From the NCBI GenBank assembly GCA_002269645.1, contig NIVC01004203.1, forward strand, positions 1-55,418: 55,418 nucleotides of DNA. The letters are read 5' to 3'. The notes beneath the pieces were generated by a model, which saw nothing but the letters and a program-made list of their open reading frames with translations, ran no database searches and was not told the DNA's origin. Shown here in pieces: positions 9,036 through 35,990 of this stretch; positions within the stretch are counted from its first letter, which is position 1; each line of letters opens with the position of its first letter. The position numbers and the translations under genes are program-made. This stretch comes from Macrostomum lignano. Its lineage: Eukaryota.

Positions 9036-10003
9036 AGGAGGCTTTTCATATTACCAATTCCAGAATCAGAATCGGTTCGGATCTTCCAAGAAAAACAGCA
9101 GTATAACTATTTAATTCTGTTGAATGTTTGACTGCCTTAACAACCTTACTTAGCACAATTTTTCACTTTATTCTTGGCGATTGTCATTCAATAATAAAAA
9201 CTTTATAGCACGTATCTCCCTAGTTATGGAGACAAAAAGTTATACTTCACACAAATTGGTTCTGGTTCTGGAACCAGAGCAAGCAATATGAAAAGGCCCA
9301 AGAATTCCCCAGGTTTCAGGGATCCTCAGAGCACTCGGGTTTCAGAAGCCCCCAAGTTTCAGGAGCGCCCTACGTGTCAGGAGCCCCCCTCCGGTGTCAA
9401 CACCCCCTTAAGGTGTCAGAAGCGCTAAGCGTCGAATTAGAGCCCAGATACTAAAATATTGGGGCTTAAAAACTGCTTCTTAATGGTAAAATGGCCTTCC
9501 AAGTCCTCAAAGTATTTTTAAGTCCCACATCCAGGGAAAAAGTTTGCCAATGCTCGGAAGACTCGACACGCACACAGCTTGCTTGCATGCACATCGCAGA
9601 TGCTGTGTGCAGCTCGGCATCAATATTGAGCTCACAATAAGCAGTCCGAGTGCCGTACATGGTAGCAATTGCTTCTAAAAGAGCAGTCAGGCAATTTTTT
9701 TCCAAGCCTCTGCAGGTGCCTCTTGGTGTACAATTTAGCTCGTAGTGTGCGATCAGCGCCTCAAGGCTTTGGTTGGGCTTGAAAAAAGATAGTTGCAGAA
9801 AGATTTTCGCGCAAGTGATGCACACAAAGTTCCTTTTTTGCCAGCAAACAGAATGAAACGCCTAAGAATAGCTGCGCCGACTTGCATGCACCGCCCCTAA
9901 GCTCTGTTCTTTATTAGGGAACGGGTTGGGTTATCTAGGAACTAACTGAAAACACCAAGCTTACCAAGCTGCAGTTCAGGTATCAAAAGAAATTCAATTC
10001 ATC

Positions 10004-10891
10004 ATGGAAGTGGCAGCAAAAATGCCTAAAGAAATACAAGATGTTATGAAAGGCGGCAGCAATAAATCCTTTCAAAAACGATTGGGCAGCTGGCTGATCC
10101 TTCCAAGTGCCATGATTTTGTACCTGTCGCAGTTCTTGCTAGATTGCACTGCTGCCTCGGAGCTACAAGCGTTGACCTTTAACACAACGTGTCCTGAGCA
10201 GCTGACGTCTTACTGCTCCTGCACTGGCATAAACTGCACCGCCAATATCATTTATCTATTGCCCCTGTACATTCTGTTTGTAGTGATTGCTGGCATTCTG
10301 CTCATATGCATACTGGTTGTGTTCAGCACCTCCTGCTGCTGTGTGACTACCGCGAGGAAGGTTAGCTGCCTTTTAATTTGAGCTCTGTTACATTTAACTC
10401 TTTTATTACCCTGAAGCATTAAATTTTCAGACGAAAGCAACTCCCGGATCTACGGCGGGAGAATCCCGGCCGCCCCCAGCGAAAGCGACTCTCCGATTAG
10501 CTGCAGAATCCAAGCTGGCGGCAGCGCCCTGCTGCTCAGCCTGCTCATCTCGCTGCTGCACAATATCCCACTGAACGCTCTCCGAGCCCAGTATCTCTAC
10601 GCCTTCAGGAAATTTGTCCCGCTAAGAGGCCTCATCAAGCTGCTGCTACCATCCGCCTGCGCACTTTTGCTCGCCATATTCGCCTTTCTGTTCCGCGTTC
10701 CGTTCTCCTTCTGGGGCTGCTGCAACGATCTCCGCGGCTTCAGCACCACTGGAGTGGTGCGGGATGCCATAGGGAATCCTGGTGACAATGTCCTGCTGTC
10801 GAGGCCGTGGCAAGTCCTGCACTTCTGCCTCATCCTGCTGTCTATCTTTGACTGCCTGTGCGCTCTGCTGCCTCTTGTAATTGGCATCTGA
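10004..10891 (+). pseudogene. Orphan 5-TM family copy 2, frameshifted
   Basis: Exon 1 10004-10360, intron to ttttcag at 10430, exon 2 10431-10891. A 4-nt deletion (GTTC absent versus copies 3 and 5) just before the donor changes the phase from 1 to 0, so exon 2 is read out of frame to an early TGA. Confidence 0.7.
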
Positions 10892-11554
10892 GATGTGGCA
10901 GTTCTCTGAACTCTCGTAGCAAAGTTTATGTACCGTGTTGACAAAAAGACTGATATTCTGCTATTTAATTTCGCACGAAAAGCTTCTGAATTTGTTATAT
11001 TGTAAAATCTGTTTTTAAGCGTGAAAACTTTGTTTTACTATGTTTTACGTTATTGCACTATACGCGAACAAATCGGAAAAAAATTTAAAATAGTATAAAT
11101 ATACTATTTTATAGCTCTTTTGAGCTATAAAATGCCGCTTTAATATGAGTACCGGGAGTACCAGAAGTACGAGAAGTGCCACCAATCTGAGAGCAGACGG
11201 GATTGCTATTGTGGAGTTTCAAAGGACCCAAGAGCCGGATAGGGAGGCTTCACGACCCGTTATGTGTCCCGCGGGCTATGAGTTTACCGACCCTGTAATT
11301 TTATTCCCGAACGTATTTAGCAATTATAGCATTATTGTATTTATGTGCAATACAACAGAGAGTTCAGACTTGGGTAAAGCAATGCGAGACAATTTTTTTT
11401 GTCACACTGAAGCAACTGTGCTTAGCAAATGAAGCCGGGCTCCACCTATTCCTGAATAAATATTGTTTAAGTGCAGTAAGTGAAATAAATAGCTCGTAAA
11501 GCTGAAATTATCGTCTGATTAAACTCAGTGATGTACGGCAGGTCCCAACTGCAA

Positions 11555-14500
11555 TCAGTCTGCCAGGAAGCCGTGACGCAGCAGATCTGCCGTGTCCGCT
11601 CTCGCTGCGGCGTCTCGCTCCACGCACCGGCGGTAGAAGTCCTTCAGACTGCTGGAGGTTCGAGCCGGGAGCTCCGGCATCTCTCTATGACAAATTCGAA
11701 CTGGAATGAGGTGCACGCACACTTCTCCGTTTGGCGGCTTCATCTCCAGCATCTCGAACACTGCGCAGCCGAACGCCCAGACGTCAGTCTTTGGCGAGTA
11801 GGTGATTCGGCCGTCGTCCCTGAACAGCTCGGGAGCCATGTAGTACCAGGTGCCTCCCAGGTGATCGGTGCTCACCTCCATGAATGTTGAGACGATCTGC
11901 TTTGCCAGGCCGAAGTCGATGAGTTTGACAACGCCTTCGTGAGTGAGCATTATGTTCGAACACTTGATGTCCCGATGAACGACTGGCCTTGTCCAATTGT
12001 GCAGGAAGTTGAGAGCGGTGCACACCTGGAATTCCGCCCAGATATTTGAAGTTCTGACCTGAGTTCTGAGGGGTCCGCGGCCTAGTGGTCTAGCGTGGCG
12101 CTCTGATGTGCCAGCGGCCCAGGCTCGATTCCAAGCGCAGTCACATTAATTTTATGCTAAATTGGAATCTTCGCTTGGCTCTGCTCGTGCAATCAACGTC
12201 CCTGAAGGCCAACCCCCAAGGCACAGTGAAGTGTACATGCCTAAAGTTAGGGCCGCTGTACACTCCTGTGTGAGTGTGTGCCTGTGCGTATGACTGCGTA
12301 CATATCCTTGCGCTTGTGTGCCTGCTCAGGGGAGTCGGTGGAATGAGCAGTAATGCCTCTCGCCGGTTGTGACAATGTCGCTTAAAGTGCGCCAGGCTGC
12401 ACACAGCCTCTAATAAAACATAATCTGAATCAAACATGGGATTTACCTGCACCGAGATCTTCTTTACTGCCTCTTCATCGAAAGGCCTGCCCTGGAGGTT
12501 CATCAGGTCCAGGAGGCTGTGGCCGGCAATCAGCTCGGTGAAGATGCAGAACTGGCCGGTGCTGGAGCGCTCGTACTTGAGAAATTGCATTATGTTCAGG
12601 TGTCAAATGCCTTTCAGAATCTCAATGCCCAGCCTCTCGCGTTCAATTGCCTTTGCAAGCTTTGCGGGGTCCTTGGTGTCATTGAGCTTGACAATCTTGA
12701 CGGCCACCGTCTGAAGCTTGTCAGTCAGCACCTTGTACACCTTGCCGAAGCCGCCCCTTCCGATTGGGTGCTTCTTGCCACCGTCTAGAATAAATTTCCA
12801 GCTAGTAAAGCTTGGATCCAGTTCCGGTGGGCACCTAAAATAGCGAAACTTGATGTTTTTTAGTTTGGAAGTAACGTACGCTCGTAGAATGGTTAAAATT
12901 GAAGCATGTTCAAATTTGTTCTCAGACGTACGAAGACTCTGATGACGTTCTATTTGAGAGCGAAGGCGGCTGCTCCGAGCCTTGGCGTCCCGAATGCGTG
13001 GCCAAACGCTCCATCTGAGAGCTTCTTCGTCCCGGTTGTGAGGTAGAAGCTGCTGAAGCTCCAGAAACCGGCGAGACGGCTGTACCTGAGCTGTCATCGC
13101 GTCGATTTTTACTCACTTGAACAACGCTGGCCGCGCTCTGCATGGGGGAGGCGGAATCGGAGTACGTGCTGATTGGCAGCTTCGAATCCAATCCGCTCTG
13201 CATGGGGGAGGCGGAATCGGAGTACGTGCTGATTGGCAGCTTCGAATCCAATCCGCTCTGCATGGGGGAGGCGGAATCGGAGTACGTGCTGATTGGCAGC
13301 TTCGAATCCAATCCGCTCTGCATGGGGGAGGCGGAATCGGAGTACGTGCTGATTGGCAGCTTCGAATCCAATCCGCTCTGCATGGGGGAGGCGGAATCGG
13401 AGTACGTGCTGATTGGCAGCTTCGAATCCAATCCGCTCTGCATGGGGGAGGCGGAATCGGAGTACGTGCTGATTGGCAGCTTCGAATCCAATCCCAGCGA
13501 CGGTTCCTGTCCTGGAAATTGATTCTGCGTCTGCGTCATCCAGCTGAGCACCTGGCTACTCCTGCTGTTCCTTCTAGCGTAGTTGGACGCCGAGTTTCCC
13601 TCGCTGTCAGGAAGCTGAAAAGCCGATGGGCCAAGCGAGTTTTTAATGCGATTCAACGATTCCACACTTTGGTGTTGAGCGGCCAGGTGAGCTAGTGTTC
13701 GGCCACGCGAGTCGCTGGCGACCAGGCAGTGCGGGCCCAAGTTGCTGATGCACCAGGCGAGAGCGGAGTCGCTCACTGTATTCTGCGCAGCCAGGTGCAC
13801 CACCGTCCACCCGCTGTTGTTCTTGGCTGAGAAAGCCTCGGTGCCGACCTGGTCAGCGAGGAACTGCAGCGAGTCCGCCCTCTGGTAGAGCGCAGCCAGG
13901 TGAAGCGGCGTGCTGCCCTGGCCGTCCTTCAGAGTCAGGCAGCCGCTGCCGCATTCACCGACCAGCCACTTAAGACTCGAGTTGTCCTGTTTGTTCATGG
14001 CGGCGCAGTGGATGGCAGTTCGCTGGCATCGACCTTGGAAATAGAAGACAGAAGGACCGACCAGCGACTTGATGAGCTCCATGGACCGGTAGTCCCTCTT
14101 CATGGCGGCCTGGTGCACGGGAGTGTCTTCGTAGTCGTCCTGAACGGCGAGACAGTCGCGCCCGCACGTTCTGATCAGCCAGTCAAAGACCGCACCCGTC
14201 CGTACGTTCGAGGCGGCCGCGTGCACAGCTGTCCGGCCGAACTGGCCGGGCTGGTTGAAGCAGTCTCTGCCGGCAGCAGTGAGAATCATGGGCAGCCAGG
14301 TCTCATCCTGGACCAGCGCGACCAGGTGCACCGGCATCTGGTTGTACTGGTTCCTGCAGGTGAGACAACTCGGTCCGAACCGGTGGATCAGGATCTCCAG
14401 GCAGTGCGGACTGTTGGTCCTGCATGCGATGTGGTGCACCAGGGTCTGCTCCACTCTGCCTTCACGATATCCGCCAACAGTCAGGGTGATGTTGGAGCCG

Positions 14501-14571
14501 ACTTCGCAGCACAGGAACAGCAGTCGCTCGCTGTCTCCGGTCTCCAGAGCCGCTATTAAGTTGGCCTCCAT
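11555..14571 (-). CDS. Ankyrin-repeat + STE/MAP3K-like Ser/Thr kinase (3 exons, ~832 codons) with one in-frame TGA; possibly a pseudogene
   Basis: Exons 14571-12932, 12834-12447 and 12025-11555 with in-phase GT-AG junctions; ~8-9 ankyrin motifs (e.g. GSTPLHLAA, GRTAVHAAA); kinase motifs GRGGFG, VAVK, HRDIKCSN, DFG, GTWYYMAPE, DVWAFG; TGA at 12605-12603 in ILKGI*HLNIMQF. Confidence 0.85.
12071..12420 (+). mobile_element. tRNA-derived SINE, copy 2, in kinase intron 2
   Basis: Head GCGGCCTAGTGGT...GGCGCTCT...GCGGCCCAGGCTCGATTCC resembles tRNA-Glu with A and B boxes; body matches 3487-3849; AATAAA near the 3' end. Confidence 0.75.
13135..13494 (-). repeat. Coding 60-bp tandem repeat x6 (GLDSKLPISTYSDSASPMQS) in the ankyrin-kinase linker
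   Basis: Six essentially identical 60-nt units, in frame. Confidence 0.95.
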
Positions 14572-15523
14572 CGAGTCTCAATGTAGAGTTTCGACAAGAA
14601 AAAAATATGTGAGTTGTGAGCTGAGCTGCTTTTTTAAAAATGCTTTGAGCTAAACACCGGTGTTTATTTGTATAGTTTAAGGCTAGTTGAGCTATTTCTG
14701 GCCGTAACGCTTAACATCTGCCTCCGAAGTTGGCATGTGCATCTTGGTGGGCAATTTAGCTCGTAGTGTGCATTCAACGTCTCTGCGCGTATGAGCTTTC
14801 GGCAGGGCTGGTAGGATGCATTAATAAGGAGCTAATTAATTTCAACTCTTGCCATTGTGCCTGGCAAAATGGGCAGGCAAATAGAATTTTGCATAGCCAA
14901 CCAGCGGGTTTTACAGCCGTGTGTCGGAACAAATCGACTGACTTGCAGCATCTGACACCCAGCCGCAACGGAAAAAACTGCCGTGCGCAACTGAGGCTTA
15001 AGCGGTGCCTTATAGTCAGTGCAGCTTATTAAATCAAAGAGCAAAACCCCTTTGGCACAGGCTATTCCTACTGTCTAAATGCACAACACTTAGCTCGTAC
15101 TTTATCTCGAATCGTTGAATACTGATAAAACTATAATTTACTTGGACAGATAATTTCTGGATAACTTGCACATTTTAGATCGTATACATGTATAATACAA
15201 TCCTAGTCACCAGATAAAGAAAACCAGTGAAATTTCTTGGAAAAAGACAGTCGCAGAAAGACTTGCGCGCAAAACATGCACGCTTAGTTCAATGCTTGCC
15301 AGCTGTACACAGTTGATGCCGGCTTCAACTCCGGAAATCGGCGGTTGACAGAGAAACCAAACGCAATACCTAAAAATAGCTGTACGGAGGCCGGACATAC
15401 ATGACTTAAGCTCTATAATTTATAATGGGAACGGGTTGGATTACCTAGAAACTAACTGATAACTCTTTAGTGAATTTGTTAAACCGCAGTTCAGGTATCA
15501 CTGAAATAGAAATTCAATTCATC

Positions 15524-16420
15524 ATGGAAGTGGCAGCCAAAATACCTGAAGCAATCGAAACTGCTGTTGAAGATGGCAACGGTGAATCCTTTCAGAAACG
15601 ATTGGGCAGCTGGCTGATCCTTCCAGGTGTCATGATTTTGTACCTGTCGCAGTTCTTGCTAGATTGCACCGCTGCCTCGGAGCTACAGACGTTGACCTTT
15701 AACGTAACGTGTCCTGAGCAGCTGACATCTCACTGCTCCTGCTCTGACAGAGAGTGCACCGCCAACATCAGCCATCTGAAACCGCTGTACATTGTGTTTG
15801 TTGTGGTTGCTGGCATTCTGCTCCTAGGCGTACTGATTGTGTTCAGCACCTCCTGCTGCTGTGTGACTACCGTTCGCGAGGAAGGTTAGCTGCCTTTAAT
15901 TTGAACTTTGTTACATTGAATTCTTCTATTACCCTGAAGCAGTAAATTTGCAGACAAAAGCGACTTACGGATCAGCAACAGGAGAGTCCAGCCCGGCCGC
16001 AGACGAAAGCGACTCAAGGATCAACAGCTAAAGAGAAACCGGGCTGGCCGCAGCGCCCTGCTGCTCAGCCTGCTCATCTCGCTGCTGCACACTGTCCCGC
16101 TGAACGCTCTGCGAGCTCAGTATCTCTACGCCTTCAAGAAATTTATCCCACTAAGAGGCCTCATCAAGCTGCTGCTACCATCCGCCTGCGCACTTTTGCT
16201 CGCCATATTCGCCTTCCTGTTCCGCGTTCCGTTCTCCTTTTGGGGCCGTTGCAGCGACCTCAGCGACTTCAGCACCGCTGGAGTGGTGCGGGCTGCAATC
16301 GGGAATCCTGATGACAATGTCCTGCTGTCGAGGCCGTGGCGCGTCCTGCACTTCTGCCTCATCCTGCTGTCCATTATTGACTGCCTGTGCGCTCTGCTGC
16401 CTCTTGTAATTGGCATCTGA
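15524..16420 (+). CDS. Orphan 5-TM family copy 3 (2 exons, 275 aa)
   Basis: Exon 1 15524-15884 (GAAG|gttagc, phase 1), 69-nt intron, exon 2 15954-16420 (tttgcag|AC); translation is open through SALLLSLLISLLH...LPLVIGI*. Confidence 0.8.
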
Positions 16421-17099
16421 GGCTTCAGTTCTCTGAACTTAAAGATTCTTTCAAGATTCTGGTAGAGTAGCTCGCTTTAGAGGCTATGTACATCAAAGAT
16501 GGGGGGTGCCGCCAACTCAGCGTGTTTTAGCTTGGAGTGTACGCTACTGCACCGTGTGTTAACTTGTTTCGATTGAAAACTACGTACATTAATTTATATT
16601 GTGTAATCAACTTATTACAGGTATATTTAATATTTATTCAACTGTTTATTAAAATTTTCTATTTCACTACTGCCCTGACGATGACCTACAAGGGTCGAAC
16701 TGCATTGGCAATTGAATTAAAGTAAATAAAAACAAGTTAATGTTTGTTCTCTCATTTATTTCAAGATTACCAGCAATATTCAGATTCAGTATCTCAAACT
16801 TAGCTCTTAAATCACCGTGAATGCCACTATTTTGTTACTCACGACTTCATGCGAACCTAAAATTCTATAGTTGCTCGGAGGAGATCCCGACCCAAATCCC
16901 AAATCCCCGATTGTTCTTAACTAGTCGTGACAGCACCTTTCCTTCAAGTAAGGTTGCTAAAAAGTGATATAAATAATAACTACTTATGCACAATGGCACA
17001 CGCATCAAATGAAACGAAAATACTCCTAATCAAGGCTCTGCCTGTGCAAAACTTTATCTTTGTGTCTTTTGAGCTAAAAATGGCGCTTCAACAGTAGGA

Positions 17100-17690: not shown

Positions 17691-17821
17691 CAGCTTGACA
17701 GTTGAAGTTGCTGGCTCCGTGGACACTGCAAAACCCCATCAGCTTTAAACTGTGCCTTATAGTCAGTCTGCCTTTTTAAATTATTGAGCAAATGGCAGCT
17801 TCTACTGGCAGCAGCACGACA

Positions 17822-18107
17822 TTTGTCCCACTAGGAAGCCTTATCAAGCTGCTGCTACCATCCGCCTGCGCACTTTTGCTCGCCATATTCGCCTTCCTGT
17901 TCCGCGTTCCGTTCTCCTTCTGGGGCTGCTGCACCGAGCTCCGCAGCTTCAGCACCGCTGGAGTTGTGCTCGATGCCATCGGGAATCCTGATGACGCCGG
18001 TGTCCTCTGGACGAGGCCGTGGCAAGTCCTGCACTTCTGTCTCATTCTGCTATCCATCCATCATTGACTGCCTGTGCGCTCTGCTGGCTCTTCTAATTGG
18101 CATCTGA
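17822..18107 (+). pseudogene. Orphan 5-TM family copy 4: 3' fragment of exon 2
   Basis: Matches exon 2 from FVPL..IKLLLPSAC to GI*; exon 1 is absent; a 4-nt duplication (tccatccatc) shifts the frame. Confidence 0.8.
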
Positions 18108-18393
18108 GCTGTGGCATTTTTCTGAACTTTTTGGCAAATATTATTTAGCAATAATAAGCAATATTCAGATTTAGCATCTCAAACTTAGCTTTTAAATCTC
18201 GGTGAATGTCAGTGTTCTGCTAAATATGCATAATGCGTGCTCTAAGTTCATCTGGTATACATTAGTATCCGTCCTATGATAGTGCTCGGACGGAATCCCG
18301 ACCTAAATCCCTAATCCTCGACTGTTCTTGACTAGTCGTGACAACAGTTAACAGATATAAAAGTACTTCTGCAAAGTGGCAAGCACATCCAAT

Positions 18394-19193
18394 TGTCGTA
18401 ACCCGGGTCGGTTTGAGTGCCCAGTCCCAGGTACAATATGTTATACGTAATATAACAGGCGTAGTGACGCTCTGTCTGGTACTTGTATGGATACGAGCAG
18501 GCGTGGCGACGCTCTGCGATAATGGGTCGCTCCATCTGGTGTTGTGACACTCCGAGTTCACGCTGCGGCTCTAGGTGTGGTGACACTCTCGAGTGCTTCT
18601 AGTTTCGATACTGTAGGTTGTACACACTATATAAAGTAACCGGTACAGTACTACAATAATTATACAACGCTGCTGTGCTGCAGTGGTCACAGTCGCAGGC
18701 GTGATGACGCTCTAGCTATGGAACCACTGTTACGGCAAGGCCTCAGAAAAGCTAAAGAAGTGAATGAACTCGGGGTCTTACCGGTGCCAGAAGCTGTGAA
18801 GCTCGTTCGAATATCGCTAGCACTTGACCACTTGGCCACTTGGCTCGCAATTAATTGAGTCCTCGCAGTAAGAGACCGTCTAGACACGGCTCGCTTGAAA
18901 CAGGGTAGAGGGGCAGACAGTGTGAGAGAGAGAAACGCCAAACAAAAGAAATGACCTCTCAGCCAATCAGCGTGCCCGCCGAGCAGATCTGACTGAATGG
19001 GGGCTAGAGCGAAAAGCGCAAACTCACAGGCCCAGCCAATCAGTGGCCGCCGCGGGGAAAGACACAAGCCGTGCCGGGCGACCCCCAACCAGTTCTGCCT
19101 GGTTGGGCAGCCAGAACTGGTCCGGGATGGCCGCCTAGGGCGCACGGAAAAAACTCAAAAAGTGCAAGAGCACTCAACAGGCCAGACACCACA
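18394..19193. mobile_element. Solo LTR (800 bp) carrying a spliced-leader-like sequence
   Basis: Ends TGTCG...CCACA (TG..CA); 4-bp TSD caat/aaat with one mismatch; interrupts a segment that is contiguous in the paralogous flank at ~16990-17040 (catcaaatgaa). Confidence 0.7.
18847..18890 (-). other. Spliced-leader-exon-like sequence
   Basis: GCCGTGTCTAGACGGTCTCTTACTGCGAGGACTCAATTAATTGC. The last 35 nt match the M. lignano SL as recalled (..AGACGGTCTCTTACTGCGAAGACTCAATTTATTGCATG) at 33/35; it also matches 22158-22180 within this window. Confidence 0.75.
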
Positions 19194-19500: not shown

Positions 19501-20896
19501 ACCATTATATACCTGGCTGACAAAAATACTGATATTCTGCTAATTAATTTCCCGCCAAAAGCTTCTCACTTTGTTATGCTGTAAAATTTGTTTCAATATG
19601 TCATACGTTATTGCACTAAACGCGAACCAGTGGAAATACATTAAAAATGGTATAAGTATACCGGCAGTGGAGCGCGAGGACCAAAAAAATTTAACCTGCT
19701 TTTCTTTTGTTCTCGTTTTAATCAATTCTTAGCCTTGCTTTCTCTTAGTCATTTGTCGAGGAGCAGTCTCAACAGTGTTTGCTGGTAAAGCAGTGGTTGC
19801 AGATTAAGCACCAGGGGCTTTAGCGCCTGAAGCGTTTTATTGCAGAGAAAAGGACGTTTTGCCTATGGAACAGTGCTTGACTGAATAAAGCGTGTTGCAG
19901 TGGGAAGCGGAAGGGCAAATTGCCAAGTGCCAGTCCCCATACTGTCGAGACCAAAGAAAAGGGGGGAAGTCCCAGGGGAAATTAAGATGTGATGCCTAGA
20001 CATATAAACGTGATGCGTCAGTGAGTCGTGATAGACAGTAAATCCGTGAAGGAAGCCAGGATTCCTCTCTCGATCATTAATAATGACGTTTTGGGCTTAG
20101 AATCAGTAGCCAACAGTGTCTTGCAGCTCGGGCACTGGAGCTCGGGCACTGGAACACCAGGGGCACATTGTACCAACGGTAATTCCATAGTTTTAGTTAT
20201 AGATAGTAAGCACATCATTTAGTTTAAAAATACTAATTTACTAGTAGTATCTGTGATTTTTACTGTCTAAATGCACGTCACTTTATTTATCTCGAATCGT
20301 TGAGTACTGATTGAATATTAGATACTATATTAGATTATATTATAGTATATTTGCAATAGGGGCTTCGTTTTTAATGTATAGTTTTGCTAGAACTTTTCAT
20401 TTTTGGAACTCCGCCAGCTGTAAGGCAAATGAAATAAACTCGGTTTCAATCCTTGTTTCTTCTCTCGATCATTCGAGCTATTCTGATATACTTCAACTAT
20501 TCTAATTTGGAGACGAAACTGATAATCAGCTTCGGAGCTAGTGCTTACTCTCGTGTTACTTATTTCGAGTCGTAGATAGTGACATAAGAATAGCCCCAAG
20601 ATTGGGAGAGTAAACCGTTTATAACGAGACCTATTAGATTTAGTAAAACAACTCTATAGTGGATAGTGCGAGAAATCAATAAGTATTGAGCTCTGAGCTC
20701 ACTAGACTACTTTTATATTTTTGGTACAAGCGAACGTAAGAATGATTGATGCATAAAAGCACAAGGGTTTTAAAAGAACGCACACACTAGTCACGCTCAA
20801 TGAAGCATTGTCAGTCAATCGATAAAATAAAACAGCGAGTGTACTCAATGTACACCCGCTGAGTCACGCGATACGACAACTCTCCCATCGTAGTTT

Positions 20897-22180
20897 GTTG
20901 TTGTTAAACGGGGTGGGAAGCTACGGGGCTACCCGCGGATCAGCCCTGGGAGGGGCTCTGCCGCAGAGGGCACTACCAAGGGCACAGATAAGACTGTGAA
21001 CCCGAGATACCCAAACCAATTTAGTTGGGAGAGGGCGAGGGACCTCAAGTCTATGGTACAAGACACCGCCAAACCAACAGTGGAATCAGGGACGGTGCTA
21101 GGACCGAGTCCACCCAGGCCACCCCCCAGCAGACAGGTCCTCGGGAGTGCGCGAAAAAACAGAAATTGGAGAGCGAAATGCTAAGCGGTCCGAGTGAGGA
21201 GTTACTCCTAAACCTACGGAAATGGCTTAAACTATTGGAGCGAGTCTGGGCAGCTTATTACCAAGAGCGATCCTAAACAGCATAGTCTCCACTACTGTAG
21301 GTCTCGAGCCTCAAGGCTTTTCACTACCCAGCTCTATTTTGGAGTGAGACTGGAAGGCTTGTTTCCGAGGGGGAGACTCTAGGCGGACATTGCTACGCCT
21401 CTATTGCTACCAACCCAAGGGCATCGCCTATCCAGCTCATTATTGGGGGCCAGGCCAAGGGGTCGGGAGAAGAGGCACCCAGGGCAAGAGGACTCCGGAC
21501 TCAGCCGGTTGTCCCCGGTTCGGGACGAACATCCTTCCCAGGACACCAATCCACTGTCAGGATGAGAGCCAGAGACACGCAAGCAGGGACCTTACAGCAG
21601 GAGCCAGGAGATGGACCCGAGGACAGGGCAAGATGGACCGGGCAAGGGCAGAGCTCATAACTCCAAAGATTGGAAGGCTTCTAGTGGCCAGATAAAAGAA
21701 TAAAAGAATAAAAAGCCACAAAGGCACAAAGCTAAAGGGATAAAACAGCGCTGGGATGCCAGCCCAGAAAAAAAGAATGGCAGTGGGGAGGAGCACCATA
21801 GCCCTAAAGCAGGCAGCTTGCCGGCCTGCAGCCCGGGTGCTCAGCCTCAGGGCTGGCATGCTACTGGGTCTACCGTACACCTTTGTGAATTGGTCGTTCT
21901 TTCCTGCAGGGCGGGTTCGACCGGGGGGCTCAGTCCCGACCTAGCCACACTGCAGTCCAGAGAACCTACTCACTCCGGGCACCACCCCCCCTAAACCAAG
22001 GCCGAGGGCCAAATAATTGGAATGTACACCTAAGAAAGATAGGGTTTATTTTTAGATGGGCACAGCCCCTCCGGGGCGGACCCTTAGAAATTGGCATAGC
22101 CAATCGGATTGCGCACAACCCTTAGACAAGCTGCCAGAGAGGCAACCAGGGTAAAAACAGTCAGAGACCGTCTTTACGGC
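20897..22180 (-). mobile_element. 1.28-kb nested insertion of unknown class, with an SL-like 5' end and an (AAC)n 3' tail
   Basis: Flanked by the direct repeat (C)GTAGTTT at 20889-20896 and 22180-22187; removing it restores pol ..RLNYDGRV.. and the PPT/LTR junction; no TIR; no recognisable ORF. Confidence 0.8.
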
Positions 22181-25100
22181 GTAGTTTAGGCGGACGGGAA
22201 TCGATCGAGCTCTGCTTGATCTTCTGAGAGCTTGTGCTGGTCCTTGATCTGGAAGTTGCAGCGGTCGAGGCTGCGACGGTGGCGGCGGCGTTGGCGGCGG
22301 CGTTGGCGGCGGCGTTGGCGGCGGCGTTGGCGGCGGCGGCGGCGGCGACGGTGGCGGTGGCGGCGGCAGCTGCAGCGGCGGTGGCGGCGGAACCAACGGT
22401 TGCGGTAGTGGAGGCCTGAGCTCACCGCTAAATTCCGGATTCGTCTGCACCGGCCCAGGCCGCTGGGAAGTCTTGTCGATTCGCATCTGTTCTGTGTGCC
22501 GCCGCACCATCCGGTTGTTCGGCAGAATGCACTTGTACCAGTTGCTGCCCTCCTTGCCGACCACCATAGCCGATGTCCAGGTTCGCTCGTTCCCGCGGCT
22601 AAAGTCTTGAACGAACACCGCCTCGCCCTCCTCGAAGACTCGTCTTTGTGCGCCCGAGTTGTGCTGCTGCTTCTGCTTTTCCTGGCTCTCGAGAACTCGC
22701 TTGGCGATGTCTGGCCTCGGTACGTCAAGCAGGCTACGCAGCGTCCGGTGCATCAGCAGCTCACACGGTGCCACTCCCGTCGTTGGATGCGGTGTAGTAC
22801 GGTAGCTGAGCAGGAATCTGGCCAGCTGGGTCTCCAGGGAGCTGCCGTCATTGGCCTGCTTCTTCAGGGAGTTCTTAACAGTTTGCACTGCTCGCTCAGC
22901 TTGGCCATTGGAAGCCGGGTGGTAGGGTGGCGTGCGGATGTGCCGAATTCCGTTCTTGGCACAAAAGGCGTCGAACTCGAAGCGAAGGTCGTCGTCGCTG
23001 TCGTCACGTACACATCGAGCCACTTTGAGAAGGAGTCGACCACCACCAGCAGCATCCGACCTTGGACGGGACCGGCAAAATCGACGTGGATTCTCGACCA
23101 AGGCCTTGCCGTTAGCGGCCATGGCTGCAGCGGAGCTTCTGGTCCGGCTCGCTGGTCTTTCTGGCAGTCCGTGCAGCTTGCTGCCTTGGCCTCAATGTCA
23201 CGATCCATGCCCGGCCACCATATGTAACTTCTGGCAAGCGACTTCATCCGGGATGCTCCAGGGTGTCCAACATGCAGGCAGTCGAGCAAGCGGCTTTGGC
23301 CGACTTCAGGAATGACGACACGACTGCCCCAGAGAACGCAGCCGTCTTGAACTGACAATTCCTGGTGCCGTTTCCCGAAGGGCACCCAATCGGAAGTCCA
23401 GGAATCTCGGTCTGGCCAGGCCGAGAGACAGTAAAGAATTACGCGTGACAATGTAGGGTCGCGGCGGGACCAGGTGCGCACGTCTGATGAAGTCACCGGC
23501 CCGGCGTCCAGGCAGTCCATCACTTGCACGACTTCTGGAGGCACCGGAACTTCCTTAGGGCCCGCTGATGCAGGAAGGCGGCTTAAGGCGTCTGCTCGGA
23601 GTATGGAGACCCCGCTGCGGTGTACAAGACGGTACCGGTACGCGGTCAGCAGCAACGCCCATCGTTGGACTCGGCCGGAAGCCAGGGCTGGAAGCGGTCG
23701 CTCTTGTCCTAGAAGGCCGAGAAGCGGCCGGTGGTCGGTCAACAGGTTGAACTCCCGACCAAACAGATAGTGATGGAATTTTTTCACACCGAAAACCAGC
23801 GCCAAGGCCTCCTTCTCCAGCTGGCAGTAATTTTTCTCTGCTGAGCTGAGGCTGCGCGAAGCGTACGCGATCGGCTTGTCCATGCCGTCCAGACGGTGGA
23901 ATATGACGGCACCGAGCCCGTACTGCGATGCGTCGCACTCCAGGTAGAGCTCTTCTGCAGCGTTATAGTGGACTAGGACGCTGGGGTGCGTGAGCAGCTG
24001 CTTTGCCGCGCTGAACGCGTCCGCCTCGCTGCGATCCCACTGCCACCTTGAGTTCTTCTCCAAGAGCCTGTGCAGCGGGGCCAGAACACTAGAGAGATTT
24101 GGCAAAAACTTGCCGTAGTAGTTGATGAGGCCCAAGAAGCTCCTCAGTTGAGTCGTGTTAGTCGGTGCAGGCGAGTCCAGCACAGCTCGAACCTTATCGT
24201 CCAGCGGGTGCAGCCCTTCGGCGTCGATGCGGTGGCCTAGGTACGTGACTTCGTCCCTGAAAAAGGTGCACTTCTCAAGCTTGCAGGTCAGCCCGGACTC
24301 CTTGAAGACCTTCAGAACTGCTCTCAGGTTGCGGAGGTGACTGGCGTCGTCTTCGCCTGTGATGATGACATCGTCGATGAAGGATGCAGAGTGCGGAATT
24401 CCTCGCAGTAAGCTGTCCATCACCCGCTGAAACACGCTGGGGGCGATCGACACGCCGAAAGGCAGACGGGTGTAGCGAAGAAGTCCCAGCGAGGTGTTGA
24501 TGGTACAGAGCTCTTGAGCATCCTCATCCAGGGGAAGCTGCGAAAATGCCTGGCTCAGATCCAGTTTTGAGAACTTCTTACCGCCAGCCAAGCGTCAAAA
24601 CAGCTCGTCGATGTTCGGCAGCGGGTAAGCCTCAGGCCGGATAGCTGCGTTGACCGACTGCTTGAAATCAGCGCAGATGCGCACGCTGCCGTCGGACTTC
24701 ATTACCGGCACGATCGGGGACGCCCAGTCGGAATTTTTGACCGGCACCAGGATTCCTTGGTCGATTTCCTTCTTCAGCTGCTGCTCAACCTTCTCGCGCA
24801 GCGCAAACGGCACCGGCCGCGCCTTATAGAACCTTGGTCTGGCGTTCTCCTTCAGACTGATGGACACCGGCTTGCCGCTGAACTCGCCCAAACCTTGGAA
24901 GACTTCTGAGAACTCCTGTAGCAACTCCTTGGCTGCATCAGCTTCTTCCATACGCTTGATAGATTGCCAGTCCAGCCGCAGGCGGTGTAGCCAGTCTCGA
25001 CCAAGGAGGCTCGGACCACAACCGGCGACAACCAGCAGCGGCAGCTGTTCCTCGGCCGAACCTTGCGAAGCTCGCACGCGTACGAAGAGCTGACCGAGGA

Positions 25101-26166
25101 CACGGACGGTTTGACCGGTGTACGTACTGAGCTGAACCGTTGACGCAGACAGAGACATCCGGCTTCCCAGGTTTTCCTTGAACGTACGTTCGGACATCAG
25201 CGATACGGATGCCCCCGTGTCCACCTCCATCTCGAATCGCTTCTCCTCGATGAAGACAGAGGTCACGATTGGAGGAAACCTGGCCTGCGATCGGTCAGCA
25301 CCCAGATGGTAGAAGGGATAAGCGACCTCGGCTGGGCTGGGCGGCTCGGCGGCCTGAGCTGAGCTGCTGTCTGAAGGCTGCTGGTCAACCAGCTGGTGCA
25401 TTTGCATGTGCTGTGTCCCCGCCTTGCATGCCTTCGCGGTGTGCCCGGTTTTGCTGCAGTTGAAACAGCGTTTGTCCGCGAAGGGACATTTGGCTGCCGG
25501 ATGGCGAGTCGACAAGCAGCGGAAACAGCGCCGCCGGCCTTCTGTTCCAGACTGACGGCTGTCTTGCGGTCGCTGTCGTTCCATTCGAAGCACGGAGTCG
25601 CTCTCTGTCGCTGACGATGCCGATGTCACTGCCGCAGGTTTTGCTGAGCCCAGCGATTGACAGTTTTTGGCTGCTGACTCGCCCGCTTGCGCGATCTGTT
25701 TGGCAGTTACGAGGGTCAGCTCGGCCTCCATCAGGAGCCGGCGCTGGATTTGTTGGTCCGCGATGCCGCACACCAGCCTGTCGCGCAGCATGTCAGACAG
25801 GCTGCCGCCGTAATTGCAGAACTCCGCCAGCTTCCGCAGCTCCGCAAGGAACTCTGCCACCGACTCTCCAGGGCGCTGAACTCGGTTATTGAAGTGGAAC
25901 CTCTGAATGATCTTACTCGGCCTTGGGTTGAAATGAGCGCTCAGCAGCTCGCGTATTTCGGCATAGGATTTGTCCGCGACTTTGGCTGGAGAGCAGAGGC
26001 TTCTGGCCAACTGGAAGGTTTTCCTACCGCAGACGCTCAGCAGGGTGGCCCTCTTTTTACTTTCGTCGGTGATGTCCTGTGCCAGGAAATGTTGCTCCAG
26101 ACGCTCCTGGTACTCATCCCAGGTTTCCTCGGAGTCCTCATATTCTCCGATTGCGTGGTTAGGCAT
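22181..26166 (-). pseudogene. gag-pol of the Gypsy element (2 CCHC knuckles, protease, RT, RNase H, integrase), disrupted
   Basis: CFRC..H...C and CFNC..GH....C; VDTGAS; WASPIV..ADF; LPFG..FIDD; HHCC LHVGH..C..C; DFAGP; PYHPASNGQAER. In-frame TGA at 24597-24595; deletion plus frameshift near 22985 removes the second integrase Asp region. Confidence 0.92.
22277..22385. repeat. (GGC)n-rich microsatellite giving a poly-Pro tract in the integrase C-terminus
   Basis: ggcggcggcgttggcggcggcg.. translates to PPPTPPPT on the minus strand. Confidence 0.85.
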
Positions 26167-26178
26167 TGCTCAGCCACA

Positions 26179-26191
26179 ATCCTCGTCGCCA
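26179..26191 (-). other. Primer-binding site complementary to tRNA-Ser(GCU)
   Basis: TGGCGACGAGGAT, one nt after the 5' LTR; complementary to the conserved eukaryotic tRNA-Ser(GCU) 3' end AUCCUCGUCGCCA. Confidence 0.8.
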
Positions 26192-27132
26192 CTAAAACAA
26201 CTCTATAGTGGTTAGTGCGAGAAATCAAAAGTATTGAGCTCTGAGCTCACTAGACTACTTTTATATTTTGGTAAAAAGCGAACGTAAGAATGATTGATGC
26301 ATAAAAGCACAAGGGTTTTAAAAGAACGCACACACTAGTCACGCTCAATGAAGCATTGTCAGTCAATCGATAAAATAAAACAGCGAGTGTACTCAATGTA
26401 CACCCGCTGAGTCACGCGATACGACATTTAGAATCTAAGAAATCGTCTTAGAAGTCAGAACATCTACCAAAGGGTAAGAACATCCGCACCCGGGGATCTG
26501 AAAACTCGCCTAAGGGCAGAAAACCTACCAGAGTGAAAGCCGTGACCCTCTGATCCCGGTAACGCCTCAGGACTGAGAGAGAAAACCTCAATAGGCGAGT
26601 TGTAATACATAGGATAGGATAAAAGTACAGTGTCCTAAGACCGCTCAGGCTAGTAGTATATAATACGCTACCGACTTTATATGAGACGTTACCAGTTCAG
26701 CAGTAAGCTAAATTTAGAAGAAACTAGCAATCAGCGCCCCCCCGTTGGGGAGCCAAAAAATGCAGTACAAGTTTTTTTAATAAACTACATGTAAGCGTCT
26801 CTTTGCATTATACCTCAGCAACCCCTTGTAAGCCTTAACATGTCAGCAATCCCCCCACAAGCCTTAGCATACTCCCCCCTTGAAATCTCAGCTATTCCCC
26901 CCGTAAGCCTTGACATGTTAGCGATGCCCCCCCATAAACCATCTGAAAAATCCCCTGTTAACCTTGAAACCCGCTAAAATCTAACCCTCAACCCAAAACT
27001 AACCTAAACCTAACTTTAACCCAACCTAAAGCCTTGAAATCTCGGCAATTCTTCTCCCCTAAGCCTTGATATTTTAGTGATTCCTTCTTTAAGCATCACA
27101 GCACTATAGCGATTCCCTCCAACCCTTGACAT

Positions 27133-30325: not shown

Positions 30326-30855
30326 TTTTAGGATTTAAAGAGAGAAATGAACACCTAGCTACCACGGCTTGGTGACTCAACGGTGGGATTATTCTGACAG
30401 AGAACTAACACCACCAACACAACTTGGTGACAGCATTATAGTATTAGATTTATTTGAGCATTGTGATAAAACACTAATTTAGTAGGACGGATAATTTCTC
30501 GATAAACCGGTATTATATACATTTATAATGCAACCCCAGCTATTAGTTGGTGAAGACTAGTGAAATTTCTTGGAAAAGGATAGTCGCAGAAAGATTTGCG
30601 CACAACTGCTGCACACACGCAGTTCCATGTTTTCCTGCTGTACGCAGATGATGCCCCGGTTCAACTCCGAAAATCGGCGGTTGACGGAGAAACCAAACGC
30701 AATGACTGAAAATAGCAGTACAGACATGCATGCCCTGTAGCTCTGCAGTTTATAACAGAACAGTTCGGATTATCTAGGAACTGACTGAAAACTCGTCAGT
30801 GAATTTAATAAACTACATTTTAGGTATCTTTGCAATAGAATTCAAATAATTAATC

Positions 30856-32577
30856 ATGGAAGTGGCCGCCAAAATACCTGAAGCAATCGATGCTGCCATT
30901 GAAGGCCGCAACGCTGAATCCTTTCAAAAACGATTGGGCAGCTGGCTGATCCTTCCAGGTGTCATGATTTTGTACCTGTCGCAGTTCGTGCTAGATTGCA
31001 CCGCTGCCTCGGAGCTACAGACGTTGACCTTTAACGTAACGTGTCCTGAGCAGCTGACATCTCACTGCTCCTGCTCTGACAGAGACTGCACCGCAGCCAT
31101 CAGCCATCTGCAACCGCTGTACATTCTGTTTGTAGTGATTGCAGGCATTCTGCTCATAGGCGTACTGATTGTGTTCAGCACCTCCTGCTGCTGTGTGACT
31201 ACCGTTCGCGAGGAAGGTTAGCTGCCTTTAATTTGAACTTTGTTACATTGAATTCTTTTACTACTCTGAAGAATTAAATTTTCAGACGAAAGAGACTCTC
31301 CGATCGACGGCGAGGAAATCCGGCCCGGCCCCAGGGAAAGAGACTCTTGGATCGACGGCGGGGGAATCCGGCCCGGCCCCAGGGAAAGAGACTCTCGGAT
31401 CGACGGCGGGGGAATCCGGCCCGGCCCCAGGGAAAGAGACTCTTGGATCGACGGCGGGGGAATCCGGCCCGGCAACAGGGAAAGAGACTCTCGGATCGAC
31501 GGCGAATGGCCCGGCCCCAGGGAAAGAGACTCTTGGATCGACGGCGGGGGAATCCGGCCCGGCAACAGGGAAAGAGACTCTCGGATCGACGGCGGACGGC
31601 CCGGCCCCAGGGAAAGAGACTCTTGGATCGACGGCGGGGGAATCCGGCCCGGCAACAGGGAAAGAGACTCTTGGATCGACGGCGGGGGAATCCGGCCCGG
31701 CCCCAGGGAAAGAGACTCTCGGATCGACGGCGGACGGCCCGGCCCCAGGGAAAGAGATTCTCGGATTGACGGCGGAGGAATCCGGCCCGGCCCCAGGGAA
31801 AGAGACTCTCGGATCGACGGCGGACGGCCCGGCCCCAGGGAAAGAGACTCTCGGATCGACGGCGGAGGAATCCGGCACGGCCCCAGCGAAAGCGACTCTC
31901 GGATCGACGGCGGACGGCCCGGCCCCAGGGAAAGCGACTCTCGGATTGACGGCGGAGGAATCCGGCCCGGCCCCAGCGAAAGAGACTCTCGGATCGACGG
32001 CGGACGGCCCGGCCCCAGGGAAAGCGACTCTCGGATCGACGGCGGAGGAATCCGGCACGGCCCCAGCGAAAGCGACTCTCGGATCGACGGCGAGGAAATC
32101 CGGCCCGGCCCCAGAGAAAGCGACTCTCGGATCGACGGCGAGGAAATCCGGCCCGGCCCCAGAGAAAGCGACTCTCCGATCAACAGCAGGGGAATCCGGG
32201 CCTGTCGCAGCGCCCTGCTGCTCAGCCTGCTCATCTCGCTGCTGCACACTGTCCCGCTGAACGCTCTTCGAGCTCAGTATCTCCATGCCTTCAGGAAATT
32301 TATCCCACTAAGAGGCCTCATCAAGCTGCTGCTACCACCCGTCTGCGCACTTTTGCTCGCCATATTCGCCTTTCTGTTCCGCGTTCCGTTCTCCTTCTGG
32401 GGCCGCTGCAGCGACCTCCGCGGCTTCAGCACCGCTGGAGTGGTGCGGGATGCCATAGGGAATCCTGGTGATAATGTCCTGCTGTCGAGGCCGTGGCGAG
32501 TCCTGCACTTCTGTCTGATCCTGCTGTCCATCATTGACTGTCTGTGCGCTCTGCTGGCTCTTCTACTTGGCATCTGA
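30856..32577 (+). CDS. Orphan 5-TM family copy 5 (2 exons, 550 aa) with a repeat-expanded loop
   Basis: Exon 1 30856-31216 (phase 1), exon 2 31286-32577; the frame is preserved across 20 repeat units into SALLLSLL..LLGI*. Confidence 0.78.
31288..32190 (+). repeat. Coding minisatellite, 48/42-bp units x20 (RERDSRIDGGGIRPGP / RERDSRIDGGRPGP)
   Basis: Unit starts are separated by 13 intervals of 48 nt and 6 of 42 nt (876 nt in total). Confidence 0.92.
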
Positions 32578-33188
32578 GGTGTGGCAGATCTCTGAACTTT
32601 TGGCAAATAGCTCGTATTATTTAACAGTAACCAGCAATATTCAGATTCAGTATCTCAAATTTAGCTTTTAAATCTCGGTGAATGTCGGTGTTCTGTTAAA
32701 TACGAAGTCCTTGCGAACCCAAAATTCATGATGTCTTCTGGACGCTTCAGCTATTATTCCTTAGTTAAGGATGGTTCGATGGCGACTGTTACCTTTCAGA
32801 TCCAAATCTTTATTTACCCTCCTGCGTGTAAGACGTAGATGTACGCTCGTAACTCTCAAGAACTCTACACTAATTTTCAATCAAACTAATCGTCACGAGC
32901 ATCAATCGTAAGCTCGTTCCTTTTTGAATAAATCTGTTATATACTCGTACTAATAAAAAGCAGTGATACATTCAATTACGCTTTATTGGATTAATATATG
33001 TTGATACATATATTAGAGTCCAGATGCAGAATGCGGACGTTATATTTAAATAAATAGTCATAACTGCCTCCCTAGAGAAGAACCTGTTCACCCTATCTTA
33101 GCAGATCTTGTCCCAGCGCATCAGGATCTTACAAGATGTGTGACACTTTCTTGAAAGAGATTGTGGTGACTTTATTGATTGATTTCTA

Positions 33189-34340: not shown

Positions 34341-35990
34341 TTTGGTGTCTGGACAAAGGTGTCTGGGAAATGGGGGTATGAAACATATTCCCCACTGATT
34401 CTAGCTTTCCGCCAGTCAATAAGCAAGACCCTCGTGCTTTTACCACTTGATAAGAAGATTATACGTACTTTAGAGCATAATGACCGCAGTCACTCTATTT
34501 TGGTGTCGCAGTCACTGATTTAGGCACCGCAGGCATTCATTTTGGCACCGCAGGAAGGAGAACAAAGCAACGCAAGGAATGCATTGGAACACTTAGTGGA
34601 CTTGTGAACCTGTGAAGATGCCAATACAAAACGCATGACTGCTCCATGCGTATTCTAGCAGTGCCGAAGCTGAGAGATTGGATAACAAAACTGAGAACTT
34701 TTTATTTGAAGTCCGACTTACATACAAGTACTTTGAGTTACGCGAGTTCAGAAAGCTCTCTTGCAGGTACATGAGAGACGAGAGACAGGTTACGCAGGTA
34801 AGAAGTGTTTGCTATTGTTAATTCAGGTACTTTTGAAGCGACATCAAGTACCCGGCATACGCAGCTGCCCCCTGTTTTGTAGGAATATTACGGCCTTACT
34901 GATGACGTCGCATCCATTAGGAGCTCGCGTTTCAACAGCTCAGAAACGTCAGCTCGCTCGCTCGGGTTCTTCATCATATAGTAACGATAAGCATTCGACA
35001 AAGCTCCTCTCGACAGAGGCAGCATCTCAAAGTTGTGGATTCAGTCCGGCAACTTCTGGTCCTTGAGCTCGTAATATTGGTATACGTCATTTCAAGCTGA
35101 GACAAAACCAACCGATGATCTTGGCAATGCCTTTGTCAGAATAGCATTATCACCATTCAGATCCCTGTGCAGAAGGTTTATTTGATGCGCTCTGATTCAC
35201 CTGGGCGGATATGCTCAGCGAATCACTTCTCATCCAAGTATCTCTTCCGGTTACATGGCATGATGGCAGCTCAGAAATGCAGAAACCGACTTTTTTCCGC
35301 GCATTGTCCCGGTTCATAAATCTGGAAAAATTCAATATTTCTGTTTTTGGATGCATCTCAGTGTAGCTCAACTCCGACTTTTTCATTTTTCCCACCCTTT
35401 CCTGCTTGAACCGATATCTCCAGATTGAACCTGCATGAGAACCTTGACAGTGATGTCGGACTTGATGCTTGTTGTCAGTTACACTCTGATCCAACTACCA
35501 TCTTTTTTGCAAAGGAGCCTCTATACGAGGTAATGCATATTTCGTAATGGGGTGTCTACAGAGCCCCTGATATTATCATAACCCCTAATGTGATATACCC
35601 TAAATTTCACAACCCCAGAAATTTCACACTAAGGCCTAAAAACGATTTTTTGACAACTTTCACTTCCTCTAAATTCCGTAAAGCCGAAATTTCTTAGCAT
35701 CTAAAGTACTAACTGTTTATGAAATTTAGGGTTCGTGTTTTGCCCCATTGAGTCAGGATGAAGCTGTCCGGTGTAAAGTGCTATTGCATTCTTAAGTAAT
35801 GTTTATTGTTATAGTATATGAGATACGCTCATATAGTCATTAGTGGTTTTCAATCGTACCAGAGGAGGTCCTGAACTCTCAACAAACTCACTCACGATTG
35901 GTTGGGCGATTCCACGAAAAAAATGGCGAGTAACCCAAGTAAATAGCAATAAGTTTGTCTGCCAGAGCACAGAGCAGAACCGCCTCCACC

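Follow-up and report, generated by a model that had tools for sequence, protein, structure and literature searches.

Within a 55,418-bp stretch of the genome of Macrostomum lignano, a free-living flatworm (contig NIVC01004203.1; the whole stretch is called the window here), a 1284-bp non-coding insert on the minus strand (20897-22180) begins with the first 23 nucleotides (nt) of the spliced leader (SL). Read from 22180 down to 20897, the insert runs 5' GCCGTAAAGACGGTCTCTGACTG ... CTTCCCACCCCGTTTAACAACAAC 3', is flanked by a short target-site duplication (TSD) and lies inside a Gypsy/Ty3 long terminal repeat (LTR) retrotransposon. Judged from its sequence, what appears to be new is a TSD-flanked non-coding retroposon, in a free-living flatworm, that starts precisely with the leader's 5' half; an association of partial leaders with long interspersed nuclear elements (LINEs) and LTR elements in flatworms had already been noted, not dissected (PMC12582326). 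We favor, with a probability of roughly 40%, the reading that a LINE mobilized the insert as a full-length copy of a retroposon, non-coding and non-autonomous, and that the RNA template started at position +1 of an SL gene.

The insert and its spliced-leader head

The head of the insert (element nt 1-23, GCCGTAAAGACGGTCTCTGACTG; 22158..22180, minus strand) corresponds to nt 1-23 of the SL RNA gene with one change, T19G. Within the window this 23-mer has a single occurrence, and 0 of 100 shuffles contain it. It agrees at 21 of 22 positions with the start, CCGTAAAGACGGTCTCTTACTG..., of the published M. lignano SL, CCGTAAAGACGGTCTCTTACTGCGAAGACTCAATTTATTGCATG (PMC5173321; PMC8629364), and at 22 of 23 with two genuine SL RNA genes recovered from metagenomic and genomic collections (L001, 615-637; L007, 1589-1611), both of which carry the leading G. 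Both genes read ..CTTT / GCCGTAAAGACGGTCTCTTACTGCGAAGACTCAATTTATTGCATG / GTAAGACACCG.., followed by a hairpin, AUUUUUAG and another hairpin. The original prediction had matched the first 23 nt to the SL 5' end at 22 positions and had seen the similarity stop there; against genuine SL genes the match holds, leading G included, and the divergence after nt 23 is exact, with no similarity between SL RNA nt 24-110 and any part of the element (p>0.2). The remainder of the SL exon (nt 24-45), the splice donor GTAAG, the Sm site and the intron are all absent. On these alignments we conclude that the head is truly SL-derived, and only in nt 1-23. The 46 nt around the junction of head and body read GCCGTAAAGACGGTCTCTGACTGTTTTTACCCTGGTTGCCTCTCTG, with TTTTTACC on the body side, and an RNA copied from this element would start GCCGTAAAGACGGTCTCTGACTGTTTTT.

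With SL origin confined to nt 1-23, neither SL RNA itself nor an RNA trans-spliced in the usual way was the source. Identity as an SL gene or pseudogene was rejected, given the lack of a splice donor, of an Sm-type site and of similarity to SL nt 24-110; a hairpin - AAUUUCUAAGG - hairpin arrangement at element nt 76-122 bears a loose resemblance to the Sm layout of SL RNA. We also rejected a retrocopy of an ordinarily trans-spliced RNA, for which the whole 45-nt leader would be expected. The original prediction had made the same objection to trans-splicing, that it adds the whole leader and not half of it, and the objection stands.

A modified form of that idea would have a retrocopied trans-spliced transcript lose SL nt 24-45, by deletion or by skipping of the reverse transcriptase, or would invoke a minor SL variant (GCCGTAAAGACGGTCTCTGACTGTTTTTACC...) that shares the first 23 nt. 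SL paralogues in other animals often have a common 5' part and a different 3' part. Calvelo et al. read partial leaders associated with transposable elements (TEs) in parasitic flatworms as traces of trans-spliced transcripts (PMC12582326). Loss from the leader, however, requires an extra, ad hoc event that ended exactly so as to leave a clean hairpin (described below), and neither an ATG nor a leader-like end occurs in the next 60 nt, the first ATG lying near nt 92; as for a variant, M. lignano transcriptomes have yielded one SL only (PMC5173321; PMC8629364). We hold both forms of this explanation to be decidedly improbable.

The boundaries of the insert are those of a retroposed copy. The upstream TSD copy, AAACTAC, occupies 22181..22187 and the downstream copy, AAACTACG, occupies 20889..20896, both on the minus strand. 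Position 22180, a G, can be assigned to SL nt 1 or to the duplication as its eighth base, and the predicted 7-8-bp TSD was thus borne out as AAACTAC(G) on both sides of 20897-22180. The duplication is read from the filled site alone; the empty site is predicted to carry a single AAACTACG between ..CCGCCT and ATGGGAGAG. The 7 nt before the SL start equal the 7 nt after the (AAC)3 end, with a chance probability of 4^-7, or ~6e-5. Each landmark, the start of the SL and the end of the window's sole (AAC)3 run, is defined independently of the other, with the caveat that the run was chosen as a landmark post hoc, when the sequence had already been seen. The bottom-strand nick would have been 5'-CGTAGTTT/AGGCGG-3', of the TTT/A type preferred by apurinic-type LINE endonucleases. 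The 3' tail, (AAC)3 (20897..20905, minus strand), is preceded by CTTCCCACCCCGTTT, and the tail run AACAACAAC is found nowhere else in the window. Together, the TSD, the TTT/A nick, the microsatellite tail and the absence of terminal inverted repeats support a retroposed insertion of the target-primed type.

The insert lies in the 3' end of its host, where the original prediction had placed it: the Gypsy element is complete, and the insert is situated between the end of pol and the polypurine tract, in the same orientation as Gypsy. The 1284-bp block interrupts the last pol codons 18 bp short of the 3' LTR, and when the block and one copy of the repeat are removed in silico, Gypsy pol continues ...RLNYDGRVVVSRDSAGVH-stop into the LTR. 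Could the 1.28 kb instead be native Gypsy sequence, with the flanking repeat and the SL match arising by coincidence or as an assembly artifact? The 7-mer AAACTAC occurs nine times in the window, and the evidence comes from the filled site. Against this, the 22/23 SL match stands at the exact boundary (0/100 shuffles), the same 7-8-mer follows directly on the only (AAC)3 run in the window (p ~6e-5), and the pol frame is cut by the element and resumes sensibly on its removal. We consider this explanation barely credible.

The body of the element (nt 24-1275; 20906..22157, minus strand) begins TTTTTACCCTGG and is non-coding. The insert lacks both terminal inverted repeats and LTRs of its own, and its longest sense-strand open reading frame (ORF) spans 107 aa from a GTG start, in keeping with the earlier statement that it holds neither inverted termini nor an ORF. 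A Pfam search in six frames gave no match, nor did a comparison of its six-frame stop-free pieces with 5.8 billion proteins, and neither the ORF scan nor the six-frame Pfam search revealed coding for a reverse transcriptase or a restriction-like endonuclease. Lacking coding capacity, the insert would be at best a non-autonomous dependant. Rfam, at gathering and E-value thresholds, detected no ribozyme (HDV-like or hammerhead), SL or small nuclear RNA (snRNA) family in or around the insert, a result that is uninformative for SL RNA, as the genuine SL genes in L001 and L007 also lack an Rfam SL match. Two further identities were rejected: a cut-and-paste DNA transposon with an 8-bp TSD (for example, hAT), for lack of terminal inverted repeats, and a decayed LINE coding region, for lack of a Pfam signal in any frame. 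Separately, two 14-nt segments, ~55 nt from the 3' end and ~110 nt from the 5' end of the element (20949-20962 and 22059-22072; GGAGGGGCTCTGCC and GGCACAGCCCCTCC), are 93% complementary, which could reflect long-range pairing of the RNA ends or chance in GC-rich sequence.

Origin of the spliced-leader head

An RNA made up of SL nt 1-23, a 1.26-kb non-coding body and an (AAC)n end was evidently reverse-transcribed into a TTT/A-nicked site in Gypsy and copied to its very 5' end. In the reading that we favor, the head would come from read-through at an SL promoter, a donor copy would reside in an SL gene, and a LINE partner would supply the enzymes. The strong snRNA-type SL promoter would transcribe that donor, fused behind SL nt 23, into a co-transcript of SL(1-23) and the element; a LINE reverse transcriptase would copy this co-transcript, and the progeny would keep half a leader at their exact 5' end wherever they inserted. 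The present copy would then be an off-target landing in the Gypsy 3' end. The logic would be that of SLACS/CZAR of trypanosomes or, more modestly, that of a 5' transduction out of a single fortunate donor copy. Element and SL gene share their first base, which in the element directly abuts the TSD; this would be expected if the cDNA reached the 5' end of a transcript made from an SL promoter, a start that we deduce from DNA and not from RNA.

The junction has a predicted structure of its own. Element nt 4-30 (22151..22177, minus strand) can form a 5' terminal hairpin, GUAAAGACGGUC-UCU-GACUGUUUUUAC, of 12 bp including two G:U pairs, which crosses the SL/body junction and is closed by the loop UCU. 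The 7 nt that follow the SL part (TTTTTAC) are complementary to SL nt 4-10 (GTAAAGA), and the weak self-complementarity of the SL itself also contributes to the pairing. The fold is predicted at -13.2 kcal/mol (z = -3.5), and an equally good one arose in 1 of 200 shuffles; T19G creates the closing C15-G19 pair, the predicted energy with the canonical U19 being -10.5 kcal/mol. The 5' 141 nt of the element are strongly structured (predicted -52.6 kcal/mol, z = -3.3), and the 5' ~140 nt hold the palindrome GATTGGCTATGCCAAT (CCAAT/ATTGG). In genuine SL RNA, nt 9-26 are predicted to form one strand of stem I, opposite the splice donor, so position 23 is no structural boundary of the SL RNA. Selection on a heritable 5' end would account for a non-random hairpin across the junction more readily than a single accident would, and the folding predictions in this way lend mild support to a heritable head.

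The single mismatch of the head points mildly in the same direction. Because the two LTRs of the host Gypsy differ by only 2.6%, a head copied from SL RNA at the time of insertion would be expected to show ~0.3 or fewer changes per 23 nt, versus the one observed, which is more easily explained by a head that evolved within a family. Mild support for an origin at an SL promoter also comes from an SL relic that lies 3.3 kb away on the same strand (described below). The Gypsy target CCGCCT/AAACTAC further resembles positions -16 to -4 of the L001 SL gene, CGCCGT/AAACTCT (p ~0.005-0.013), a similarity to the region upstream of an SL gene that was noticed post hoc and that we downgrade to a possible lead.

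The head might instead record a one-off template switch, in which a LINE reverse transcriptase jumped, at or near the 5' end of the element RNA, onto nt 23 of an SL RNA or SL-capped mRNA and ran to its 5' end. The architecture fits exactly, with a small-RNA part that starts from nt 1, lies in sense to the 3' part and shares with it a single pair of TSDs. SL RNA is an abundant Sm-class nuclear RNA, and the copy is unique among the window, ~110 kb of further M. lignano scaffolds and the protein collection. U6/L1 chimera junctions carry a U-tract, which the T5 at the present junction recalls. Template switching is known in the L1, L2 and RTE clades, and the Sm-class U5 (cut at 36-98 of 116) and U3 provide documented cases in which an internal switch produced heads truncated at the 3' end (PMC4476161). 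Because of these truncated U5 and U3 heads, a template-switch chimera appears, by analogy, more plausible than the original prediction assumed when it listed this option. On the other hand, the SL mismatch would call for a later mutation or a reverse transcriptase error (chance ~0.26 or less, given the LTR divergence); there is no microhomology between SL nt 24-30 (CGAAGAC) and the start of the body; the 12-bp junction hairpin would be a coincidence (~1/16 given the T-run, ~5e-4 otherwise); and such chimeras make up a very small fraction of insertions in genomes for which counts exist. We view a template switch, the chief competitor of the favored reading, as possible, if doubtful.

A head could also have been captured once and kept by selection, with no donor in an SL gene needed, if the first ~23 nt of the SL served as a portable unit that brought a 5' hairpin and possibly an intragenic snRNA-type promoter or cap signal. 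The heads of short interspersed nuclear elements (SINEs) derive from tRNA, 7SL or 5S genes, and Ascaris has an SL-internal promoter element. The junction hairpin with its compensating T19G is compatible with such a unit, and the structured 5' 140 nt with their palindrome could, on the predicted fold, serve as an internal promoter. Yet 1.28 kb is far above SINE length, there is no evidence of a family, the T5 after nt 23 would stop RNA polymerase III, and nothing shows snRNA-type initiation by RNA polymerase II without an upstream element. With one copy, moreover, a portable head is indistinguishable from one acquired at an SL promoter. We think an origin of this sort rather improbable.

Searches for relatives of the element bear on all of these readings. 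A self-BLAST against the window returned no second copy, the only hit being a 16-nt SL overlap at 18866-18881, and ~110 kb of M. lignano Mlig_3_7 scaffolds (five pieces, L002-L006, fetched via ankyrin paralogues) contained neither the element nor a matching 3' end. Scanning GTDB genomes for the junction pattern gave 0 matches, as did scanning IMG/VR for the SL pattern; in JGI metagenomes and GTDB the SL pattern recovered one intact SL gene each and no SL-headed element. Exact look-ups of five window ORFs and of the UniRef protein P0033 (98% identical) returned no record.

Several observations weigh against transcription from an SL promoter. One copy is known, with none other in the window, the ~110 kb of scaffolds or, as translated pieces, the protein collection. 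An autonomous LINE with the same 3' end was not found in the window or in the 110 kb of M. lignano loci, and no donor copy was seen inside an SL gene, both recovered SL genes being intact. One mismatch in 23 nt is weak evidence; the T5 run after nt 23 partly explains the hairpin trivially, as U-runs pair with the AAAGA of the SL; and the resemblance of the target site is missing from the L007 SL gene, while L001 is not M. lignano. Weighing both sides, we lean mildly towards a heritable head derived from an SL promoter. Of the options listed in the original prediction, a heritable head would agree with two, a non-autonomous element with an SL-derived head and an off-target copy of an element specific for SL genes. 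A bolder and more tentative form of this reading, which we regard as unlikely though worth stating, is that a lineage of Macrostomum retroposons is resident in SL genes and has adopted the SL promoter and 5' hairpin to serve as its 5' end, the insert being a non-autonomous, off-target copy.

Comparison with known systems

The closest precedent is found among the SLACS, CZAR and CRE1-2 elements (CRE clade) of trypanosomatids. SLACS/CZAR split the SL exon after nt 11 and before nt 12 (PMC5814959), and transcription of SLACS begins at +1 of the SL gene so interrupted (PMC3447711). Their transcripts carry leader nt 1-11 before the body, much as the present insert carries nt 1-23. By contrast, those elements are 6-7 kb long and autonomous, encode a reverse transcriptase and a restriction-like endonuclease, and reside only inside SL genes, whereas the insert is 1.28 kb, non-coding and lodged in Gypsy, and the hosts, a flatworm and kinetoplastids, are distant. 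NeSL-1 of Caenorhabditis elegans, of the NeSL/Utopia lineage, targets SL1 or U2 snRNA genes (PMC4640811) and offers a metazoan precedent for retrotransposons that reside in SL or snRNA genes; NeSL is autonomous and site-specific, however, and none of its coding capacity occurs in the insert. With no coding capacity and no copy seen in an SL gene, the insert is not a demonstrated member of either CRE or NeSL. To our knowledge, retrotransposons that reside in SL genes have been described only in trypanosomatids (CRE clade) and nematodes (NeSL-1).

The snRNA/LINE chimeras (U6/L1, U5/L1, U3/L1) resemble the insert in that they start from nt 1 of the snRNA, are fused in sense and share a single TSD, with 3'-truncated heads in the case of U5 and U3. 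They differ from it in being unique events with poly(A) tails and L1 bodies, whereas the insert has an (AAC)3 tail and a body of no recognized family, and its head carries a mismatch and pairs with the body as a hairpin. R2 elements with 28S bases at their 5' end, and 5' transductions by SVA and L1, involve upstream host sequence that is co-transcribed and carried to new sites. Here, the host sequence would be the start of an SL gene, and we know of no description in flatworms of an SL gene start as the co-transcribed head of a retroposon. Retroposed trans-spliced mRNAs leave relict SLs, as in dinoflagellates and at the 5' ends of M. lignano genes, and so share with the insert a genome-encoded SL that arose outside SL genes by retroposition; those relics are whole leaders or 3' parts, in contrast to the 5' 23 nt found here. 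In parasitic flatworms, 597 TE-associated (LINE/LTR) partial SL loci have been discarded as non-genes and read as trans-spliced TE transcripts (Calvelo et al. 2025, PMC12582326). By analogy, we list these loci in favor of an SL-promoter origin. They were only counted, with no junction, TSD or 5'-half specificity described, whereas the present case concerns a free-living macrostomid in which the partial leader is the 5' half and stands at the very 5' end of a TSD-flanked insert.

Known meetings between SL trans-splicing and retroelements are few, and comprise the parasites of SL genes in trypanosomes and nematodes and the retrocopies of trans-spliced mRNAs. A flatworm retroposon with such a head would point to one of two things: a third lineage, distant from the others, in which retroelements hijack SL promoters, or recombination between LINE enzymes and SL RNA of the kind seen with U5, U3 and U6. 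Both answers would offer a mechanism behind the 'partial leader' loci, hundreds in number, that flatworm SL annotation at present discards. A Macrostomum lineage resident in SL genes, if real, would be the flatworm counterpart of SLACS/CZAR and NeSL-1, the first in Platyhelminthes, and a possible explanation of the TE-associated partial leaders that number in the hundreds in parasitic flatworms. The insert further cautions that a 5' SL k-mer in a Macrostomum genome or transcriptome need not be a sign of trans-splicing.

SL genes, the host Gypsy element and the surrounding window

The two SL RNA genes used for comparison are both of Macrostomum type. L001 (JGI metagenome contig Ga0302322_100095745) carries an intact gene at 615-725, 1.1 kb upstream of a 382-aa ORF (1774-2922) that we take, by eye and with no family search behind the label, to be Na/K-ATPase beta-like. 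The 382-aa protein is a singleton at 90% identity, which indicates that L001 stems from a Macrostomum-like species other than M. lignano; the motif GCCGTAAA occurs twice in L001, at -15 and +1 of the SL gene. L007 (GTDB record JAGQZA010000190.1) carries an SL RNA gene at 1589-1700, the leader of which matches the M. lignano leader at every position, and, 300 bp away, a eukaryotic U1 snRNA gene at 1121-1283 (Rfam, 151.7 bits); it shows U1-SL gene linkage in a Macrostomum-type lineage. This 3.7-kb contig is filed in 'MAG: Flavobacteriaceae bacterium HKST-UBA79'; by its gene content, it is evidently a flatworm contaminant wrongly binned in a bacterial metagenome-assembled genome.

The original prediction had also noted an SL-like motif at 18847-18890, which proved to be real and part of something larger: by sequence similarity to the SL gene, window positions 18700-18893 (minus strand) have the appearance of an SL RNA gene that has degenerated or of an SL paralogue that has diverged. 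The leader of this relic, GCCGTGTCTAGACGGTCTCTTACTGCGAGGACTCAATTAATTGCGAG, is ~85% identical to SL nt 1-45, with an altered loop and the CCGT/ACGG stem kept. After ~62 extra nt there follows GTAAGACCCCGAG...TTCTTTAGC, which aligns with the SL intron GTAAGACACCGG...TATTTTTAGC (p ~0.006, shuffling), and two GATTGGCT boxes lie upstream. The head of the element has the canonical loop and was therefore not copied from the relic in its present form. A dispersed ~1-2 kb repeat family is represented in the window by four copies (9846-10932, 15123-16440, 17815-18226 and 30464-32702) with 80-90% identity and internal tandem repeats, and one of these copies ends ~600 bp from the relic.

The host Gypsy/Ty3 element spans 20639..26431 on the minus strand and has a 5-bp TSD of its own, CTAAA. 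Its 235-bp LTRs (26426-26193 and 20878-20644) are identical at 229 of 235 positions; a primer-binding site, TGGCGACGAGG, adjoins the 5' LTR, and the polypurine tract, ATGGGAGAGT, occupies 20888-20879. All coding parts lie on the minus strand: a gag-protease ORF (26166-24595), an ORF for reverse transcriptase, RNaseH and the integrase zinc domain (24591-22864), and the integrase core (23122-22181), the ORF of which runs on to 22052, into the 1284-bp insert. The ORFs 24591-22864 and 23122-22052 overlap by 259 nt in different frames, and the host Gypsy is defective or at least frameshifted. A repeat of the GGCGGCGGCGTT type encodes the C-terminus of its pol (22240-22345), a (PPPT)n stretch rich in proline. 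Sister copies were sought with the integrase as a protein query; the best match was only 46% identical, and the family is absent from the collection.

A second LTR-retrotransposon fragment, at the edge of the window (53329-55274, minus strand), encodes an H2C2 zinc integrase domain, an rve core and DUF5641, a set typical of BEL/Pao elements. All strong matches of an ankyrin ORF at 12922-14571 (minus strand) belong to M. lignano, and over the overlap one of these proteins reaches 98% identity. This ORF belongs to an ankyrin and protein-kinase gene family that is expanded in M. lignano, and contains perfectly identical 60-bp tandem repeats at 13134-13494. Two paralogous rhodopsin-type G-protein-coupled receptor genes lie on the plus strand at 35955-37715 and 40302-41516, with ~74% DNA identity, and the first of them ends in a C-terminal tandem repeat of PELQPGNPCQSRR, present ~9 times at 37101-37614.

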